DNA from: Caecitellus pseudoparvulus
Lineage: Eukaryota > Protista > Bigyra: Bicosoecida
Reading direction: 5' to 3'
Length of the DNA: 51,491 nucleotides
NCBI GenBank assembly: GCA_965644315.1
Contig: CBFFRQ010000033.1
Span: forward strand, 1-51,491
The notes beneath the pieces are model-generated. The model saw only the letters and a list, made by a program, of their open reading frames with translations, was not told the origin of the DNA and searched no databases. Below, piece after piece: positions 8,901 through 51,491 of this stretch (within the stretch, counting starts at the first letter, position 1; every line of letters starts with the position of its first letter). Both the position numbers and the translations under genes were made by a program.

Positions 8901-11900
8901 CGCTCTCTGCGTCGGTGGCCCGCAGCCACCTCAGCTTCGCGATGCCGTCCGCGACGAGCTGTGCGTCGGCCGTGGGCGAGACAGGTTTGGCAAGGGGCAC
9001 CGGGGCCAGCCCAGCGACATCCCACACAGCCTGCACCTTGGGCGGTGTGGCGTCAGCGGGAACGCCCACGAGGGCGATGCTCGCCAGGCGCCCGGCCGCA
9101 TCCCCGGCTGCCACGCCGATGTACCCTCGCTGGCCGTGCTGCAAGCGAGCAGCTGAGGCTCCCAGCAAGTCCAGGGCGCTGGCCGTGACCCCAGGCGCCA
9201 GCGCCAGTCGTGTGCCGTCCGAACGCAGCACCTGCTGCCCGCCCAGCCCCGTGCCGACAGCATGCACCAGGGTGTCGAGAGACGTCTCCGCATCCGTTGC
9301 AGCCGAAGCGTTGAGCGCGAAGGTGATGCCCGCGCCGGCACCAGACACAGCGCAGGGCAGGCACAGGCCGACACTGTCCCCCGAGCCAGCCTTGAAGGTC
9401 CCTAGGGGGCAGGGCACGCACGACCCGTCGTGGCTGAAAGTCCCTGCCCCGCACGTGCCGGATGCCGTGGGCGGGGTGGGCAGTGTGTAGGCAGCAGGGC
9501 AGGAGCCAGCACATGGTACACAGGACCCGGTGCTCGCGTCCAGTCTGAAGCCTGCCTCGCAGTGGCACGTACCACCGCCGCTTGCGAAGTCGGGCACAAA
9601 TGCCGCATTGCTGTCCACACACGCACAGGTTGTGCGGTCTGTGCCGGCTGGCACAACCGCGAGCGTGGCTGCTTGCAGGCGCAGGGAGCTCGCGACGTCG
9701 GGGGCGCTGTCGTCGCAGGTGATGCCGTCTGAAGCCACGTGGGTAGTCAGGCCCGCCGTGTTGGTGGCCCACACTGAGGTAAACACAGCCTGACCGGGCT
9801 GCAAGTTCAAGCCACTGGCCGTTGCAAAGGTGCGGCGGCCCACGGAAGATCGCGGGATGATGTCGCAGTCCCCAGCAGCATGGCCTGCGCACCACTCGTA
9901 CCTGGTGATGCCTCCGGCGTCAAAGAAGCTGCCCCAAGTGGCTCGCACAGCAGAGCAGTCAGACGTCGCGTCATCATCGACGCCGACATGCATGGAATCC
10001 CACACCGTGCCGGCCAGGGGGCCAGTCGTCACTACTGCGGCTGCGTTGGAGGTGACTGTCGTGCTGAGCCCGGCCGCGTTCACAGCCGTCACCTCGCACG
10101 TGTACTGCTGCTGGTTAGCCAGCTCTGATCCAGGGGAGAAAGTGAAGGTGTGCGTGGCAGGGGAGGCGGCCAGGACCTGCACCGGACCGGAGCGGACTGC
10201 CCCACGGGGACCACCCTCGCGCAACACGACTTCGTAGTGTGCAATGGGCGCGACATCGTCAGAGAAGCCCTCCCAGGAGCAGGCAAAGGCGGAATCGTCG
10301 GTGGTGAAGGACAGGTCGCTCTGCACTCCGTCCCACGCCCTGCCAGGCAGAGGCGGCGTGACGTCAGGGATGACGGCGCGGGACACAGTCTTGCTGGCAT
10401 GCCCCGCCGCATTCAGGCCCACCAATGACACGTGGTACTCCTGCCCTTGCACGAGGTCCAGCTCCACAAACGTCACATTGGTCACATGGAACGTGTCTTC
10501 GAACACGCGCACTTGCTGGCCGTAGGGACTGCTGCCGAGGGCGGCAGTGTACGTCACTTCAGCGGAAGGGGACTCGGCATCATCAAAGGCGGCCCACGTT
10601 GCGCTGATGGTGGTGAGTGAGGCGATGTAGAGGGTGTCTGGGAGGCCCGATGCGGCGAGGTTGATCGCCCCTGTGAGCCCAACTGCAGAAGGCGTGGATG
10701 CCGTCGTGTCGGGTGTGAAGTCTGTGTAAAACGCTCGGGTGGTAATGCCGATGCGGGCGAGAACTGTGACAGTGTACAGCGTCCCGGGCGCGAGGGTCAG
10801 GCCGTACACGCTGGCATGTGTGGCTGTGCCCACATCGGTCAGCGCCTTCACGTCCCCAACCCCAGCAGCAGTGCCCAGGGCCCACTGGAAGGTGAAGTGC
10901 GGCACAGCTGTGCCGTTCTCAGTGTCCCCGGTGCTGGTCCAGGTCTCCCCAGGTGGCGCCAGGGTGTTTGACAGCACACTCCACTCAACTTCTAGATGCT
11001 TGTCCGAGCTGGTGTAGGTGGCCAGCACAGGGGATGGCTCTGGCTCCACAAGCACGCCACGCCCGTCCAACTGCACCGCGCCAGTCGTGTCGATGACGAC
11101 ACCAGGCGCAGTCACGCTTGTCGTGCGCCCTGCACGGTTGGTCATGTACACTGTCACATAGTACTTCTCGCCATCCACAAGGGCAGCGTCAAGGACGCAA
11201 GAGGTGGACGTGCCGACGTCAGTGCGGGGCACGATGTTACATGCGCCTCGGAGGGTGCCAGCGCAGCAAGCGAAGGACTGCAGCCCAGACTCCTCGTCAC
11301 TCCACGCCTCGAACACTGAGTTATTGCTGAAGACCCAGCTGGCACTGAGGTTGGCGGCATGCCCCTGGTATGGCGCGTCTACGTGGTGCGTGAGGGTGTT
11401 CCACACCGCCCCGGCGACGGGACTGCTGCCATCCACGAGCAAGCCATCAGACTCCAACAGCACGGACGCGTCACCGACGTTGTTCACTGCTCGCACTTGC
11501 ACACAGTAGCGCAAGCCGAATGTCAAGGGCAAGCCCTCTGCAGTGAAGGTGGTGGCGAGGGGCGGTGCGACGTCTGTCCAATCCCGCACATTGCGAGAGG
11601 TGACGTCTCCGTTGTCGCACCAGCGAACGGCATACTGGTACTTGGCGATGGCACCGTCGTCCTCCAGGAAAGCGTCCCATTGGAACTTGAGGAAGGTGGC
11701 GGCAGGGGTGAAGTCTGCATCGCCAGTGACACCCGGCGTGAGGTCCAGCACCGTGCCGCCCACAGCAGGCTCGGGGGGAGTTCCGTCAAACACCACGCCA
11801 TCAGACACCTTGTCCACAAACAAGCCATTAGTGGACACTGCCCTGACAATGACGAAATACGTCGTGCCCTGGGTCAGCACAATGGTGGCTGGGTTCGTGG

Positions 11901-41593: not shown

Positions 41594-41984
41594 GCCTCCT
41601 TGACACCTTTGCAGCCGCGTTCCCCAAGACCCAACAAAACGAACAAGCAGTACTCCCACTTTGGGGGGGAAGTATTGCCCGTAAACCGTCTTCTGCCGAG
41701 GAACGCGGTTGGATTGTGACCAGGGATTGTCAGGGTGTCCGGCTCCGTACCCCCCGGGGGGACGCCACTCTACGTGCTTGTAGGTTAGGTGGAGCTGAAG
41801 CAACGCGTTTTTAGTCTGAATTTTCAAAATTGACTCTCATACTGCACTGCAACGTATTCTCCAAGTGTTCTAGTTGCCTCTGAACGTGTTCTTGTTTTCG
41901 GGACTTCCAGGTGTCGTGAGATACGGGCTTATGTGCATTTCCCCCCTGGCGTTACACAGGCGTTTCGGGCACCCTACACCTAAA

Positions 41985-44394
41985 ATGTCATCAGCTGGCC
42001 AGAAAGGCATCACCCACACATACGTGAAGCATGTTGCAGGCATGAAATCATCTTCAGTGCCCTTTGGCGCTTTGACTTCTCGTCGCCTCGCCCAGATCAT
42101 GCTCAATTCCATGAAGAGGCCTGGTTTGAAATCACAGAGGCTCACATCCAGAGGCAGTTTGCCTGCCACAGTCGACTTGACACAAGTCTCGAGCGTGATC
42201 AGGGGCTGCAAAGTTCAATGGAACTCTCACACGCTCGGTGAGGGTGTCTCAAAGGCCCGGATTGCTGCTCTGGCGTCGTCCATCCTGTCACTGGCCGGAG
42301 AGGATGCGTTGCAGGTCACAGATGACCCTCCCGAGGACGCAAGCTACGACACAGTGCACCTCATGTCAAGCGGGGGAACATACCTACTTCCTGTAGATAC
42401 CTGGGACTCGATAATCTTCGCCTTGGCACAGGATGGCGGCTTCTACAAGGGAAAGCGTGGTGCTGGCTTCCTGCTCGACGAAGTAGGTCGCCATTTGCGG
42501 CTCCTTAGTGCTCAGGTCTGCACCTAGCTTGCTCTGCTTGCAGGCAAAGAAGCTTAATCTGACAGGAAAGCACCCATGGGCAATCAAAGCGGGGGAAATC
42601 CAGAGCTTCGTCGCTGCAGGCGCAAGCGCAGTCCATCGCAGAGCACAGGAGTCCTCACGTCGTCCCATTGGTTGGAAACAGGCTCAAGTCGCACAGGAAG
42701 TTGTCAAACTCCTTGGAGTCGAAGTGCTTACACTCTTGAGTGAGGGCCACAGCAGCCTCGGGGCTGTGGAGCCGAGACACTGTGCATCCTTGGCCGGAGG
42801 AGCAGCGGGCCAAGCACGTGCTTCTCGCAAGTCGTCCAGGCTGCAGGCAGCCACAGCTGAGGATTCAGACGACGCGGATATTGAACTTCCAGGGGCTAGA
42901 GAGGAAACTGTCATCGAGACACGGCGGTTTGGGAGCTCTGCAGCGCCCAGTCCAGCCACGGGGGCAGGCGGAGGCACAGAGGCAGAGGCCACTCCCCAAC
43001 AAGTGGTGGAGCCCGCGACCGGAGCACACGCAGCGGTGCTCCTCAAGGCTCTAGACTTCCAGAAGCTCTGCCTTTCTGATTCAAGCTCTGTGGCTGCACT
43101 CGGAGGCGCTGGTGGAGGGCAACCGGCAGCGATCGAGGCGGTGCTGGGGGGCCGAGCAAGCCCACAGCCTCACCACGCCCAGGTACTTCAAAGAACCCCT
43201 GCAGGGAAGCACTCGCTTGTTATTTCGCCCCTGGATGACGATCAAGCGGATCTTCTCGGCTTGCTGACAGGCACTTTGCAGGGAGTTGTCCTCCTGGCGA
43301 GCCCTTGTCCATCACGGCATTGGGCAAAGGTGTCGCGCCTGCTACAAAGTGGACTAGCAGCGTGCATCTTGCCCTCCGATGAAGTTGATTGCGACTGTGA
43401 GGTGGCGCGCAAGCTTGCAGTCGGAAAAGTGCCCTCATTCGGGGACTGCGTCGCCACCTGTGCGTCGGCTGGTGACATGGTCCCCAGCGATGCCGCACTC
43501 CATCCAAGCTTGACGCAAGGGGCCGTGATAGTTGCGTCCATCCCACAGGCGATGCAGTTCTTCTCGACAACTTCATCGACACGTGAACATAGAAAGCTTG
43601 CGGCACTAGTCATGAACCTGCCTGCGGGTCCTTTGCCACTCATGCAAGTCGACAGTGACCCACTGAGGCAGCTGAGCCAGGCTGCCCAAGCAGCAAGCAT
43701 CCCTGTTCTCGCCACGAGCACCGTAGCTGCACCAGGCACCGTGCCTCGCATCCTTTCGTACCTGCACCTTGTTCCAGAGCACACTACCATTGCCAGGCGC
43801 AGTGTCCGGACTGCAGTGCAGCTGCATGTGATCCAAGAGCCACTGGCCGGGGGCAGCAGCGGATCACGCCCAAGGTCTGCTGCAGCAGCAACGAAGCATC
43901 ACTCTTTTGATGAAGTTTTCAAGCTTTTAGCTCAGTTCCAGAGCTTCGAAAGGGTGCTTTTTGTGTGCCGAGACGAAGCCACGACAAACGCGCTGGACAG
44001 GCGTGTCCGCAAAGCTCTGGCGCGAAGTGACACGGAAGCCCTTGAGCCCCAAAGCTCTGGTGGGTCGCCCCAAACACAACAAGGCCTCTGCGTGAGCGTG
44101 AGCCCAACGTCTGTGGCGTTGGACATGCCGCTTCACGCGTACGATTGCGTCATTGTCCATCACTTCCCAGGAGACCTGGCCACCCTTGCCGAGCTTGCAG
44201 CCAAGTGTGCAGTGGACGTACCTGGACACATGTACGTGTTTTTTAACGAATCTGAAGCTTCAAGGGTCAGTGCTGGCATGGAGGAAGATGGTGCACAGGC
44301 AGGTGACCTTCTTGCCTTCAACTTGGCCAAGAGCTGGGCAGAGCTTCACGAGGGAAGGCCAGACAGGGATGCGTGGGCTGGGCTGGCTGCCTAA
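41985..44394 (+). CDS. Degenerate RecQ-like SF2 helicase (pseudo-helicase) with unrecognised N-terminal region
   Basis: ATG at 41985; phase-0 intron 42483-42543 (GTAGGT...TTGCAG) joins the two track ORFs. RecQ-like order: QPAAIEAVLGG, RTPAGKHSL, VVLLASP, IPVLATSTVA..TV..I..YL.L, RVLFVCR, VIVHHFPGDL..LAELAAKCAVD.PGHMYVFFNESE. DEAH and QxxGRAGR are missing. Confidence 0.6.
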
Positions 44395-44400
44395 CTGGAC

Positions 44401-47400
44401 TTGGGCCTGAGTCCGGTTGCCCTCTTTGACAGCGACGCCACAAGCACCAGCTCAGAGGGTGGCATGGCCAGTAGCCCTTGCTCCCACGTCGAGACTCCTT
44501 CACCTGTGCTGCTGGACTTTGCACGCGTAATTGAGGCCATCCGCTCGAGCCTGCAGCTCAACCCAGACCTTGAGCTGACTCTCGGCAATGTGTTTAGCTT
44601 GGCAAGCATCGGCAAGCTCCCCAACGAAGCAGATAAGCACTGCGTTTTGGAGAACAGGGAAGCCTTGACCCGCTTGCGAGATGTGCTGGCAGCAACCAGA
44701 CACGTTGGGGTGGCGCCTTTGGATGTCAAGCGCGCCGTGAGAGCTGCGTCTCATCAAGGGGCGCTCATCTTGAAGGAGCACCGGCACCATAGCCGAGTGA
44801 CTCTAGCGCATGCGACTGCTCAGGCCACCGTCATCCAGGTCCGACTATCCCGTGTGGACGGGACTCCCAGGACAGACACCATAGTCTCCAGCGTCCTGCC
44901 AACACCAAAGGGAGCAAGCAGTCCTCTGCATGCCTTACTTGTCTATCGACGGTCACTCGGGCAGCGCATTCGATTTGGCCCGCTCGAAGAATGTGGCCCA
45001 GCGCTCTCACAAGCGGCGAGGGAGTTTGGATGCCTCATCAAGCTGGAGAACAAGCCGTGGCGCGGGAAGCAGGGGCAAGTCATGTTGACATTTGCATGCG
45101 CCCACACAAGCCCTGACTCTGCAGGTTCGGGTTGCAGCCCAGAACCAAGCAGCCCTGTTCACGATCCGCAACAGCGTGATGCTGCTCTGGCTTCGCCACA
45201 GAGACTTTGCCAGCAGTGCCCCTTCAGGATACGGGTGGCCCTAAGTCAGAAGGGATACACTCTGGAGGTTTGCATGCACCACAACCACACCCCTGCAAAG
45301 TACTTCGCAATCGATGAACCCGTTGACCCGACCAAGCAGGTCGGTCGTGCGGAGTACATGTCCCTGCCCCTCAGCCCCGTGGTGACGGAAATCATCAAAA
45401 AAAGGGCAGCAAGCACGCCTGGCGCATCCATGCTTGACATCCTTACCTATCTCCTAGCCAAGACACAGTGCTCAACCCCTGAGGTATACATGGAGCACGA
45501 CCAGATGCTCAGGGAAAAGCACGCAGCCATGTGCCAGCTCATTCAGGACGCTGGTCTCAGACGCAAACATGGACTGTTCAACATCCACCCTTCCCCTGCC
45601 GCAATCCAGGGATATTTGGACAAAATGAAGCGAGAGCAGCGCGGGGGGATGTCCGTCTTTCAGGCGTGTGTGGACATGGCGGCGGCAGACACGACCAACA
45701 CCTACTTCCACCTCAACAAGCTCAACCAAGCGGAAGACTTCAGTGTCTTGCTCATAATCACACCGCAAATGAGGAAGTATGCAGCTACAAGCGAGTACAA
45801 GGAGTCCATGAACTCCCTGGTGTACGAGGATGACACGGGAGGCACCGACAAGTTCAAGTCAAAGCTCTTCACGTGGCTGTACAGGTCACCCCACACCTCA
45901 CATGGCATCCCAGTTGCGTTCATGTACTTCCATGCAGGGGAACACCCAGTGCCTGGGGCCCTAGCCCACGCCCTCGTGTGGTCGTACCAGAAGATGGAGG
46001 CCGAGCTGGGTGGTGCGTTTCACCTCACTGCCAAGATGATGGACAAGTGCCCACATGGCCACTCCGCCTTCGCATGGCACGTGGGAACCAAGATGAAGAG
46101 GCTGCTGGACAAAGTGGGGAGTGATCCCAACGTGCCCCGCTCGCTGCAGGTCTCTGCCCAGGCGGCCCAGCGGCAGCTGGGCGACTTCGGCGCGGTGGAG
46201 GATGCCAGCAAGGCGAAGTGGCTGCCTGTGCACGAAACCATCCAGACGCTTCGCGAGCATGCCCATGAACTCAGCGCCTTCAGACACATTCCAGAAGTGC
46301 AGATGCTGGAACGCATGCTGCATAGCAAGCTGTTCCTCTGTCACTTCCACGCTCTGAAGGCTGTGAACGGGAGCGTCACCATGATCCTTCCAGACCAAGA
46401 GAGCAAAACCACCTTCACGGATGCAGCCCGCACACTGTTCACGGCAACGTCGCCTCAAGAGCTCCACCGCCACTGGCAAGTCATGAAGCAGGACGTGTGC
46501 GCTGATCCTAAGTACCGCAAAGCGCTGGAGTACTTGGAGGCGAACTGGCTGTGTGACGCGTGGCTGCCAACTTGGGCACTTTGGTTTCGCAATGACCGCT
46601 CCATGGACAACACAACAAACTATGTTGAGTCAATGTGGAACATGCTCAAGTACCGGGTCTTGAAGCGGCGCTACAACCATTCAACCTATGAGATGCTCGT
46701 TGCGCTTGTAGGGGGGCCAGAGCCAGACAAGGGAGGCTGTTTAGTGTCGTACATCCAGTATCGTGAAGTGGCCCGGGCGTACAGGACAGGTGCCCGGAGT
46801 TCCGTACAACGAATGGCGAGAGAGTCAAAAAAGAAAGGGCTCGAGATGTTCCTGAGGTGGAAGAAGGAGGGTGTCTTGGAGGAACGCATCAACCTGCAAG
46901 ACTGCAAGACGCTAACCTTCAAGATCCACAGCGAGTCACAGACCAATCCCATCTACATCGTCTCGTTGGCTAACCCCCGAACATGTGGCCCAATCTGCGA
47001 TTGCTCTGCCCACGGATCCACAGCTTCGTGCAAGCACGGCTGGGCAGCACGCCACTACGCTCACGAGATCCTGCGGTGTGATGTCGCAGGCAAGATATCG
47101 GAAACATTTGGGGGGAAAGAGCTGAGCGCCACTGAAACGGACTCGAATCCAGTTGATGGGTCTCAGATGAGCCCTGGTTGCGCCCAGGATCCGGAGGGTG
47201 CTGCCTCGCCTGCCACAGAGTCTCCCTCAACGACTGAAGGCGCCAGGGAGCCGAGCACACCAGAGGCCAAGGCAATTGCAAAGGAGCTGGCAGCCCTGGC
47301 ACTGAAGATGGAACGACTCGGTTCAGCCATTCCAAGCTCAGCAATCAGGCTTGTTAAGCGGGCTGCAACGGAGTGTGACCCAGAGATCTGCTGGGCTCCA

Positions 47401-49113
47401 GGGCTGGATGCCGCCGCCAAGGGGGCACGGAGCAGGGAGAAGTACGTTGCAAACTCTGGGAACTTCTCAGGGCACATGGCCAGAAAACTTCGACGAAAGA
47501 AGTCATTGCGAACTTCGCCTGGTAAGGGTTCCCAAGTGGACCCAGCACACGCACGCAGACTGAAGCCCTCTGACACTTCGAGCGCACAGCCAGCTCTCTG
47601 CAAGCACCCCAACCGCCGGACGCAACAAACGAAACCATCGTCGGTGACAAGCAAGAACATGGTGAGGAAGTTTTCAACACGCGCACCAGTTGCATCCAGG
47701 CCGGCTGAAGGCAGCCTTGATGCGATCGGACTGGACACGCTGTACGTGGCTCGAGAGGGAGCGGATGCCGTGTCCACGAAGCAAGTCTTCCGCGTTTGGC
47801 TTGGGGACAACCCTGAACACACCATCATCGTAGACTCCAAGGGCTTCATAATGGACAGAGTGGTGAGAGTGCCCCCCAAGCCAGTGTTCCTGCTCGTGGA
47901 TGACTTCCTTCCTTTGGCAGTCCAGCGCCTTGCGAAGGCGGCAACGAAACACTTGGCACTCTTGCGCAGCCTGCGAGAGGCTGAGAGCGGGGACTGTCTG
48001 GCACAGATGATAAGCCTGGTATTATGGAGCGCCTTCCCAGAGGATGCGGAGCGGCGTGCAGGTGCCTTTTGGTGCCCGGATGTCCTTACAGGTCTCGGCC
48101 AGCCCTCAGCGGCGGCCTCCGTCACAACCATTCGAGGAGACATCGTCCGGGCATTTGATGCGCAGGGCTGGGACTGCGTGTACGTTGTACTGGGGAATGA
48201 GTCGCAGCCACTGCTTGCTCAGTGCTTCCCTGACGGCCGTTTTGACCCAGCCAGAGACCATGTGGACCACAGCCGCCTTGCACACGTGCCCAAGGCCGAA
48301 TGGACTGAGGCGGTGACGCACATGGTTGGGGACCTTGGCAGGCTTTGGAGAGAGAGGGCTCTGCAAGGCATTCCTAAGTCGTTGTGGTACATCCATGAGA
48401 CGAGGGAGAGGTCAGTTGTCCACCCGCCTGTCCCGTTCCAGCCCAAGTTCCAAGAGGGGGACTCCATCCTCGCACGGGCATTCATCCCACCCGGCCAAGG
48501 GGAGGACGGAGAGTCCATGGACTGGGGATGGACGAATGGGTCCGATGGCTGGTACCCTGGGCGTGTGTCACAGGTGCGAGCCGACGGCACATACTCCATC
48601 ACCTTTGACGATGGCGACAGCCACGGCAGAGTGCCTGCCAAGTCTGTGCAGGTGCCACAGAGGTCGGAGAAAAGGCTGGGCGGGACAAAGAGACAGCGGG
48701 AAAGATCGGCTGCAAGTCTGGCAAGGTCTGGGGCAGCTTGTGTTGCAGAGGATGACGAGGATGACGGCAGTGAAGTGCAGGATGGGGATGTGCTCAGCCT
48801 CATGGAGCAGCCGCAGTGGTACCTCATGGTCAACACCCGTGCGCACACGCGGGCGTACTTCTATGACCCACGTGATGGGAAAACTGTATGTGGGAGGTTC
48901 CAGGAAGGGTCCAAGGTCATTGAAGCGGAGTACATGAAGCTGGACGGCGGCGAGTTGCTGGACCTGGTCACGAAGTGCGAGCCAGTGAATCCCCAACATC
49001 TGACAGGCGACATCGAGGAAGACCGAGCAGACTTGCTCATATCAAAGTCAACCTTTTTGGCCCGCAAGAGCGAGTACCACATTATTTCCAGAGGAAAACG
49101 CCGGAAGACCTGA
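44401..49113 (+). mobile_element. Mutator-like (MULE) DDE transposase ORF with FAR1/WRKY-type Zn finger, SWIM finger and C-terminal Tudor-like domain
   Basis: FAC...CPFRIRV...HHNH; VYEDDTGGTDKF..KLF...GIPVAF (D1); KMMDK (D2); FLCHFH (CxxH); TTNYVESMWNMLK (E); CDC......CKH (SWIM); FQEGDSILAR...WYPGRVSQVRADGTYSITFDDGD (Tudor). No TIRs found by eye. Confidence 0.88.
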
Positions 49114-50336
49114 GAGTAGAAGGAGCTGGGTGCCCTGCGGGCGAGCTCCAGGGAGCATTGCAGGCCCACTTCGCAGTGGTGTGCAAGTCAGAGTGGTTCT
49201 TTCCGGCATTGACTTTCGTTTTGAGGAACCATAGCCCCCCTGGGTGGAGAAGGGAGGAAGCATCGCACAAGATTTGCGAAAGGGGACATATGGCGAGAAG
49301 CCAGGTCGAGCTGGACGTCCACGAGGTCAGCGGAGAAGCTGTGGAGACGCAACAGCCTATGCTAGACCTGCGATAGGTCTTCGGGTTTTCCCTTACCATG
49401 AAAATCACCAGGGCTTGCGCAAGGATGGGCGGCAATCCGGGTACGCGGGAGACAGGAGAAGCCAGCCCGCACCAAGAAGTCGCCGACACGGATTACGCAA
49501 TGCACAGGGCTTTTCACCCACGCAGACTACGCAGGTAGTGTTGCATGCATACTGATCGAGCCCCCGTACACTGTCCTGTTGGGGATTACTGGCAGAAGCC
49601 GATGATAGAGCTCCGAAGCTCAGTGGAGTTTCATGAAACTCTGCCCAGATGGAGTTGCACCTCTGCGGCAGGCCCTGTTGAGGTTCCAGGCATATTTTCG
49701 ACCGAACCAAATTCAACTTTCACTCATAACGTAACAGAGCAAAATTCAAGCTCTGGGAAGCCTGCGTAGTCACGCTAGGCTGGCCTTGTGTCACTGCACC
49801 TGCGCTGACACCACCCACCCTTGGGACGTTGCTTTCAAGGAGCCACTACGAACACTTGCGGACGCAAAGCCCCGTAAGGCAGCGCCCAGATATAAATTTG
49901 TGACATAAAGTGTGAATCCTGTTGTATTTGATAGGGCGGAAGGTTTGCGACCCCTCGTAAGAGCTCTGCTTCAGCACCAGGCACCTCTCAGGCAGTCCCA
50001 GTGTTTCCGGGGGGGGACAGAAGCAACGCACATACCTTGCCGAAGTGCAACAGACATGAGCAGCCTAGTGGAGTTGGACAATTTCCTGGGGCCACATTCC
50101 AGGGATCCTCGCAGTCGCTTGGAGAGTAGGCGGCCGCCAGCGGGCGAGCGCAGACTTCAAGCATGGCAATGCACATTGAATTCATTTGAAACTTGTTGCA
50201 TGGTCACCCTTGCATGGCTCATGCTGTGTGTCTACCTTGAGCTACTTGCTGAGCTGTCTTGCTCTGCCTCGCGGCCACCTTGCGCTGCGCTGGCCAGCAC
50301 AGATCTCAGGTCAGCGATGCAACCTGAGGGGGGACA

Positions 50337-50358
50337 ATACATACATTAATGTATGTAT
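50337..50358. repeat. Perfect 22-bp palindrome ATACATACATTAATGTATGTAT
   Basis: Equals its own reverse complement. Confidence 0.98.
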
Positions 50359-50820
50359 GAGCGATATGTCTCAACTGCTGCCGCAGTTTGCGACTAAAAA
50401 CAGATATATTTATATATAGTTTTCTTAGATAAAATCTATAAATACCATTCTTAGATATATTTATAATAGATATATAACACTTATTAAACACTACCCCTAC
50501 AAAAACAATCCCTTATAAACCCTTGATACCATTTTTATACTACTATTTACTACTATTTTATAAGTGTTATCTTAAGGGTTATCACTACAATAAATAGAAA
50601 TAATATAAAAAATATAATAAATATATATATATATTTTTTTTAAATCTCTTCTTAACACTTCATCAACAATCAATCAAAATAAAATTGAAGCAATCAAGCA
50701 TCCATCCAATCTACCTATTCCAGAAACAATCAAAGGAGACGAAAAGCCAAAATAAAAAGATTCATTCAATATCACTTATTCATATATAATATAACCCTAA
50801 ATTTAATATAACCCTTATCA

Positions 50821-50860
50821 CTTAATCCCTTAATCCCTTAATCCCTTAATCCCTTAACCC
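50821..50860. repeat. Tandem 8-mer (CTTAATCC)4 plus degenerate copies
   Basis: Four exact copies at 50821-50852, then CTTAACCC and TGAATCC. Confidence 0.95.
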
Positions 50861-50962
50861 TGAATCCTACAAAGTGCGTGGAGTGTGTGCGAATATATAA
50901 TAAAAAACATTCTCTCACATTTTAAAAGGGTTTTAAGATAATTATTTATATTAATATATATA

Positions 50963-51491
50963 ATGTATATAATGAATTTTAACTTATATCAAAATATATT
51001 ACATTGTAAAAATATAGAAGATGATATTTTATTAACTTGTTGTGAAAATATAGAATGCGTAAGAAATAAATTTATTCAAGCTACGAGATTTAGAGGGGCT
51101 GATAATTCAAAAATTACAATTGAAGATATTAAGAATATTAAAAAATCAGGATTAACCATTGATTTAATAAAAAAATTTGATGATGGTAATTTAAATTTTA
51201 CAGTATTACATAAATTTAAAAAGTTTAGTATTGATTGGATTTTTAAATATCCAGAAAAAGAATGGAGCATTGAAGGAATAGAAAATGACAAAGAGTTTTT
51301 TTATGATTTAATAGAAATATTTGAAAATTTTAAATGGTCTTCTAATACATTAAAAGAATATATCAAAATATTAAAATGTAAAGAAAAACACAAAAGAAAA
51401 TATAAAAATGTATTAGATGAATTAATAATGGTTGTTTATCATCCTGATAATGCTGAAAGATTAGGAATATTTAATAATATATCAAAAGAGG
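50963..51491 (+). CDS. Virus-like hypothetical protein, 3'-truncated by the window (>=176 aa)
   Basis: Absent from the ORF track. My translation has no stop: MYIMNFNLYQNILHCKN...FSIDWIFKYPEKEWSIEGI...FENFKWS...YKNVLDELIMVVYHPDNAERLGIFNNISKE. Confidence 0.85.
   Translation, partial: MYIMNFNLYQNILHCKNIEDDILLTCCENIECVRNKFIQATRFRGADNSKITIEDIKNIKKSGLTIDLIKKFDDGNLNFTVLHKFKKFSIDWIFKYPEKEWSIEGIENDKEFFYDLIEIFENFKWSSNTLKEYIKILKCKEKHKRKYKNVLDELIMVVYHPDNAERLGIFNNISKE

Follow-up and report, generated by a model that had tools for sequence, protein, structure and literature searches.

A probable Mutator-like transposon of Caecitellus pseudoparvulus that joins a decayed RecQ-type helicase fold to a DDE transposase, with one copy interrupted by a private stop codon

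RecQ-type helicases combined with a transposase were found described only for superfamilies other than the Mutator-like elements (MULEs), namely Kolobok and Academ. The target-site duplication of Kolobok elements is the 4-bp TTAA. In KolobokH, for which only fungal hosts have been reported, the RecQ helicase lies downstream of the transposase (PMC9587614). RecQ-type helicases also occur in Academ (PMC3627910), and AcademH is treated in PMC10799480 and PMC10045372. MULEs generate duplications of 8-11 bp, and inverted repeats are short or absent in some of their lineages (PMC6446971). Helicases go unmentioned in a survey of 1,631 MULEs, and literature searches returned no description of a MULE-RecQ fusion, in agreement with an earlier, sequence-only reading of the DNA studied here, which knew of no MULE with an N-terminal RecQ fold. 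The stretch in question is the 51,491-nt window that constitutes contig C33 of the Caecitellus pseudoparvulus assembly (30.6 Mb in 215 contigs, ~62% G+C). In all likelihood, it contains a pseudogenised copy of an 8.25-kb cut-and-paste MULE transposon whose single gene fuses a catalytically dead RecQ fold with a DDE transposase, and the stop codon that interrupts this gene is private to the copy (Table 1).

KolobokH resembles the element in combining a DDD/E cut-and-paste transposase of the C/DxxH group and a RecQ-type helicase in one protein (PMC9587614). In the present element, however, the helicase is located upstream of the transposase and is dead in this genome, the DDE domain is MULE/IS256-like, and the G:C flanks measure ~8-10 bp. 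AcademH is similarly a DNA transposon with a superfamily 2 (SF2) or RecQ helicase of the DEAD/Helicase_C type and with 9-10-bp duplications (PMC10045372, PMC3627910, PMC10799480). Judged by description, Academ differs in not being among the C/DxxH superfamilies (PMC10045372), whereas the present family exhibits an LCHFH motif and matches MULE-domain proteins. Canonical MULEs, for example the Ulp1-protease MULE P0022, share the WRKY/FAR1-like finger, the DDE core and the SWIM finger, but not the N-terminal RecQ module of ~450 amino acids (aa), the gene of about three times the usual size or the homopolymer flanks. The P element switches its product by intron retention, and the window copy would likewise yield a truncated N-terminal product; here, though, a nonsense mutation confined to one copy, rather than regulated splicing, causes the truncation.

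Besides the window copy, referred to as C33, six near-full copies (88-95% protein identity) are present in the genome, one each on contigs C38, C54, C94 and C30 and two on C31 (C31a and C31b). All seven were combined in copy alignment A1, in which the codon at 44392-44394 was compared. Where the right end is uninterrupted, in six copies, the element measures 8,247-8,248 bp and has sharp ends; the left flanks are unrelated among copies. The repeated unit also takes in ~220 bp before the gene and ~900 bp after it. Separate searches were run for exons and domains, and the intact C38 and C54 paralogues stood in for the stop-broken C33 copy.

Table 1 Features of the element and its surroundings in the window.
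Feature	Position	Strand	Remarks
G6 run abutting the left end	41756..41761	.	left half of the duplication-like homopolymer flank
One copy of the 8,247-bp RecQ-like/MULE element	41762..50008	+	seven copies at 92.5-97% DNA identity
Left terminus	41762..41787	+	short imperfect inverted repeat; terminal motif kept in relatives
Exon 1, 166 codons (498 nt)	41985..42482	+	ATG in 7/7 copies; frame open in 5/7; dN/dS 0.49
Intron of 61 nt (GTAGGT...TTGCAG)	42483..42543	+	equal length in all copies; GT..AG in 6/7
Exon 2, 2,189 codons + TGA (6.57 kb)	42544..49113	+	one nonsense codon in C33; open in C38 and C54
Degenerate RecQ-fold helicase domain	43099..44430	+	Walker A, DExH, SAT and motif VI arginines all lost
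Candidate 60-nt intron of the earlier reading	44373..44432	+	rejected; coding sequence
TAA nonsense codon	44392..44394	+	private to C33; the six other copies have TAT, relatives Tyr/His
WRKY/FAR1-like zinc-finger DNA-binding domain (C..C...HxH)	44959..45303	+	invariant Cys/His columns; weak match to AtWRKY18 (Z 5.2)
DDE core	45823..46638	+	first D in YEDDTGG; MMDKC; CxxH motif LCHFH; E in NYVESMW
SWIM-type zinc finger (CxC..CxH)	46996..47037	+	
Tudor-like motif	48550..48618	+	in a C-terminal extension that relatives lack; E 0.03-0.5 only
Right terminus	49983..50008	+	reverse complement begins GGAAACACTG
G8 run abutting the right end	50009..50016	.	right half of the duplication-like homopolymer flank
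First 311 bp of a second repeat, R2	50017..50327	+	found after the element in C38 and C54 as well; interrupted by AT-rich DNA in the window

The sequence-only reading had noted that open reading frames (ORFs) 42508-44394 and 44401-49113 lie in one frame and are separated only by the TAA and two sense codons, which was confirmed. It further proposed that the TAA sits in a regulated in-frame intron of 60 nt, the splicing of which would give the full transposase and the retention of which would give the helicase-like protein alone. The stretch does run from a GT at 44373 through CTAAC to an AG at 44432, its GT and AG are preserved across all copies, and its length is a multiple of three and close to that of the gene's other intron, the 61 nt of which were confirmed. 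Alignment A1, in contrast, has TAT (Tyr) at the position of the stop in 6/6 other copies, which read CTTATC where the window copy alone reads CTAAC. Other copies with CAA had been named as evidence against the switch; what they carry is this different sense codon, to similar effect. The C38 and C54 copies are open over the site, with ORFs of 2,194 and 2,191 aa. Among relatives, at ~21% identity, the stop aligns to a Tyr/His column six residues past a family-invariant Trp, and this Trp is itself encoded within the proposed intron. The p-distance among copies is 0.046 in the stretch and 0.049 in the adjacent upstream coding sequence, compared with 0.21 in the real intron, so the stretch evolves neither as non-coding nor as dispensable sequence. 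Because in-frame GT..AG segments of 45-90 nt cover 91% of the 2,189 codons of exon 2 (46% for segments of 57-63 nt), its intron-like features are not above chance, and its donor, GTGGGC, is unlike the GTAGGT of the real intron.

Read evidence came from Logan contigs of four public runs, for which RNA status is the guess of the tool; X2 and X3 are runs from organism A, and X1 is a seawater metatranscriptome. The X2 and X3 contigs cover the gene from within exon 1 onward, without the 5' flank, and carry a joint, 42449/42559, over the first intron. They behave like RNA because the joint spans this intron, and they are probably RNA; the imprecise ends of the joint are probably due to differences among the copies at this place. 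For the 44372/44433 junction expected from splicing of the candidate intron, an X3 contig spans 44000-44553 without a gap and an X1 contig runs unspliced as far as 44421. The stretch is thus retained in contigs that are probably RNA (by the tool's guess and the joint over intron 1), rather than absent as an intron would be. Taken together, the copies, the relatives and the contigs argue that these 60 nt are conserved coding sequence and not a spliceosomal intron, and regulated splicing at this site is extremely unlikely. The TAA appears instead to be a one-base disabling mutation, private to the C33 copy, in which a T-to-A change turned the conserved Tyr codon TAT into a stop.

The same contigs bear on whether the stop is genuine. 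Every contig over 44394 from the four runs has T, including those of X3 and X1, and the A of the window is absent there. Since no run showed this A, it lacks independent confirmation and could be an assembly or polishing error, in which case the window copy would be intact with TAT; the TAA is, moreover, the only disabling change in C33. The contigs that cover the position nevertheless stem from paralogous or collapsed copies, differing from the window at many other positions, and five other copies bear stops or frameshifts of their own, so that decay is the norm in this genome. An error at this base is therefore considered unlikely. With a private TAA, the window copy would be limited to an N-terminal/pseudo-helicase fragment of at most 782 aa without a transposase, and it would be dead or at best non-autonomous rather than splice-regulated.

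Exon 1, starting with the ATG at 41985, joins exon 2 in frame via the 61-nt intron, and the two-exon gene is predicted to encode one protein of ~2,355 aa. The order of its parts is an N-terminal region, the RecQ fold, the WRKY/FAR1-like zinc finger, the DDE core, the SWIM finger and a C-terminal tail. That both ORFs belong to one gene with a decayed RecQ fold, a MULE-type DDE domain and a SWIM finger, as the sequence-only reading had suggested, is borne out by the open C38 and C54 copies, by profile and fold matches and by relatives with an intact helicase. No similarity was seen between exon 1 and the ORF that precedes P0001, a relative described below. The first window ORF had no match in the PDB by phmmer. 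The Tudor domain assigned earlier to the tail fared less well: a Tudor-like motif is present, its assignment is tentative, and the tail reached only E values above 0.1 against the PDB by phmmer. An Atlas feature search with the C-terminal 664 aa gave no usable match.

A query with the C38 paralogue identified P0001 and P0002, proteins of ~2,020 aa each with DEAD and Helicase_C domains, one of which bears the name RecQ in its source. When 1.84 billion protein representatives were searched exhaustively by HMMER with the zinc-finger/DDE/SWIM part, only seven long relatives (1,309-2,117 aa) emerged. The DEAD/Helicase_C module is intact upstream of the matched transposase in 7/7 of them, and colinearity within the family extends from the helicase to the SWIM finger. 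The intact RecQ-type helicase that these relatives have at the same position shows the helicase-transposase fusion to be ancestral. Metagenome contigs of the Joint Genome Institute (241 million metagenome records) contributed four loci. A scan of viral contigs with the DDE core revealed no relative.

The ATPase motifs are intact in all seven long relatives. In the copies of this genome, by comparison, another sequence stands in place of the Walker A motif, which reads PTGSGKTG in relatives; an 11-residue deletion covers the DExH box, and the SAT motif and the arginines of QxxGRxxR are likewise missing. Nowhere in this genome was a copy with an intact helicase found. The family profile matches RECQ5, RecQ, BLM and WRN at E values of 1e-29 to 1e-15. 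An AlphaFold2 model of the dead domain was of moderate confidence, with a predicted local distance difference test score (pLDDT) of 57 and a predicted template modelling score (pTM) of 0.53. Foldseek with this model returned RecQ-family chains as the top 50/50 matches (E ~1e-10, TM up to 0.62). Profile and model support a RecQ-type core fold with two RecA-like lobes. The ratio of nonsynonymous to synonymous substitution rates (dN/dS) among copies is 0.43 in the dead helicase, and the retained fold may play a non-enzymatic role in DNA binding or as a scaffold.

In the transposase part, the D of YEDDTGG, the D of MMDKC and the E of YVES are conserved among the long family members, and the C and H of LCHFH are invariant in the family alignment, in keeping with the C/DxxH signature of transposase superfamilies described in PMC10045372. 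The copies of this genome keep the DDE residues, the CxxH, the zinc-finger Cys/His and the SWIM CxC..CxH. In structural comparison, an AlphaFold2 model of the zinc-finger/DDE/SWIM part (pLDDT 69) matched best with the IS256-family transposase ISCth4 (Z 13.1 over 229 residues, root mean square deviation 3.8), followed by the transposases of the P element (Z 9.9) and Hermes (Z 8.8); the weak match to the WRKY DNA-binding domain of AtWRKY18 is confined to the N-terminal 115 residues of the model. Alignment of A5 to A6 with hhalign gave a probability of 100 and E 1.5e-39 over 459 columns that span both Ds, the CxxH, the E and the SWIM finger, with the caveat that A6 consists of weaker sequence matches of this transposase and was assembled from the same query. 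Four A6 members match Pfam MULE (PF10551), three of them at or above the cut-off, and one, P0022, has the Ulp1 protease. The family itself does not reach the Pfam gathering score for PF10551 or for Transposase_mut (PF00872), for which the cut-off is 21 bits and P0006 and P0007 attain 20.6 and 17. These matches support filing the transposase under the MULE superfamily, although they do not include a hit above the threshold of Pfam itself.

The condition of the copies is consistent with a transposon lineage. C38 is the only fully open copy. A stop occurs in exon 1 of C54; C31a has stops, C94 a stop and a frameshift, C30 a stop and frameshifts, and C31b a frameshift. The dN/dS is 0.37 for the whole of exon 2, 0.27 for the zinc finger/DDE/SWIM part and 0.46 for changes private to one copy, values that show purifying selection among the copies and fit descent from active lineages with selection on every domain. 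A ratio below 1 in every domain, even for private changes, would also be expected of multi-copy host genes domesticated from a MULE, like FAR1/FHY3 or MUSTANG, and the constant length and the absence of long inverted repeats could be read in the same way. Domestication is, however, very unlikely given that 6/7 copies are broken, that the unit includes sequence beyond the gene on both sides and has sharp conserved termini and homopolymer flanks, and that all catalytic DDE residues are retained.

Three observations concern copies and fragments of the element elsewhere. The C38 copy contains a 4.4-kb insertion (C38:150731-155142; L025:5731-10000, L040) ~20 bp before its right terminus, and terminus and G run resume past it at C38:155166. 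C104:1-1847 (L039) is 100% identical over 1,847 bp to C38:155140-156986, so C104 is apparently either an assembly duplicate of C38 or an alternative path of it. P0003 and P0004 (MED5165549.1, MED5164728.1) are fragments 96-97% identical to the protein of the element that were deposited under a 'Cyanobacteriota bacterium' metagenome-assembled genome; they probably derive from contigs of this marine eukaryote that were binned with cyanobacteria.

The multi-copy alignment also defined the boundaries of the element and its terminal repeat, which is short and imperfect (16/26 positions match in C31b). Read from the outside inwards, one end has a C run followed by GG[C/A]AA..CTG and the other a G run followed by ..GAC[A/G]C[T/C]G. 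A G run of at least 3 directly abuts the left end in 6/7 copies, and one of at least 5 in five; C30 has only GG. The element of P0001 has a 53-bp inverted repeat of 87% identity (L042:3301-3353 and 11789-11841) between flanks of C9 and C8, and that of P0005 has the same two termini in the same arrangement between C10 and C8. In the present element and in both of these, the two flanks are the identical G or C homopolymer on one strand, ~8-10 bp long and shorter or interrupted at some ends. Since G or C runs of at least 6 number only ~1.5 per kb in the window, such paired flanks are far from chance. They would represent a target-site duplication of ~8-10 bp made in a G:C run, and insertion into G:C homopolymer tracts, like mobility by DDE cut-and-paste, is inferred. 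Treating the G runs as a strand-specific oddity or as part of asymmetric termini was abandoned after comparison with the P0001 and P0005 elements; plain homopolymer duplications explain the runs because the inverted repeat has GG as its first bases and, at one end, passes into the run. A poly-G sequencing artefact was also rejected, as the runs are oriented with the element rather than with the strand of the contig, and unrelated metagenome contigs show them too.

Two features of the metagenome contigs adjoin such ends. The left terminus of the P0005 element borders a 48-nt AT-rich palindromic segment (L043:5726-5793) set between a G10 and a C10 run; this segment may represent a footprint or a very small hairpin element in a like homopolymer target. 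At contig ends, L043:12506-12816 and L048:8088-8448 contain a 177-bp tandem unit, 96% identical and in opposite orientation; the genes of the two relatives are only ~68% identical at the DNA level, and the L043 unit includes the right terminus of its element and the C run.

Several points weigh against reading the window as a decayed MULE transposon with a fused RecQ fold and a private stop. The RNA status of the contigs is a tool's guess, and none of them is the C33 copy's own transcript. The pseudo-helicase model has a pLDDT of only 57, and its alignment included active helicases. A Pfam search of the three window ORFs gave nothing useful, with no match to either of the two split ORFs, and relatives reach PF00872 only below threshold. 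The exact duplication length is blurred, since homopolymer runs slip and some are interrupted, and the inverted repeats of the copies in this genome are very short and imperfect. Finally, a search for an empty site with both C31a flanks found none, both flanks being unique.

A more specific role for the helicase module can be conceived, in which it acts as a target-selection device for G-rich homopolymer or G-quadruplex-prone DNA that steers DDE integration and has become ATP-independent in this lineage. The idea is doubtful. If true, ATP-independent targeting would explain purifying selection on a helicase stripped of its catalytic motifs. Each insertion would, in addition, duplicate the run and so recreate the target at both ends, which would explain the end-to-end arrangement of the element, R2 and AT-rich DNA with a G run at each junction.

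R2 adjoins the right G run of the element in C33, C38 and C54 (L027:5886-9900 for C54; L040, C38:155168-158417), and its left end was found solely beside this element. It begins with G8 followed by ACAGAAGCAACGC, which resembles the terminal motif of the family, and extends for at least 3.2 kb in C38 and C54 at 96% identity. Its minus strand has a 1,070-aa orphan ORF without a Pfam match, the only database relative of which (86% identity) is labelled Symbiodinium sp. KB8. In the window, AT-rich DNA (50328-51491) breaks R2 at 50327/50328, starting with a G6 run and then AC and a palindrome; past this breakpoint, C38, C54 and C104 carry on with shared GC-rich sequence. On the downstream side of the C38 copy, a ~750-bp part of R2 reappears at intervals of about 3.6 kb with 76-93% identity (C38:163880-184762; C54:347866-348615; C97:1546-2295), which suggests a long-period tandem array.

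The architecture is thus real and uncommon, and the splice gate is not; the idea of a splice switch had made the finding look exceptional and does not hold. The family would add a third, independent recruitment of a RecQ helicase to those of Kolobok and Academ, this time in Mutator-like elements and with the helicase ahead of the transposase. Public protein and metagenome data contain very few members of it. As experimental handles, it offers two naturally occurring states of the helicase, active in relatives but motif-dead yet selected here, and what looks like a strikingly simple target, the G:C homopolymer run.

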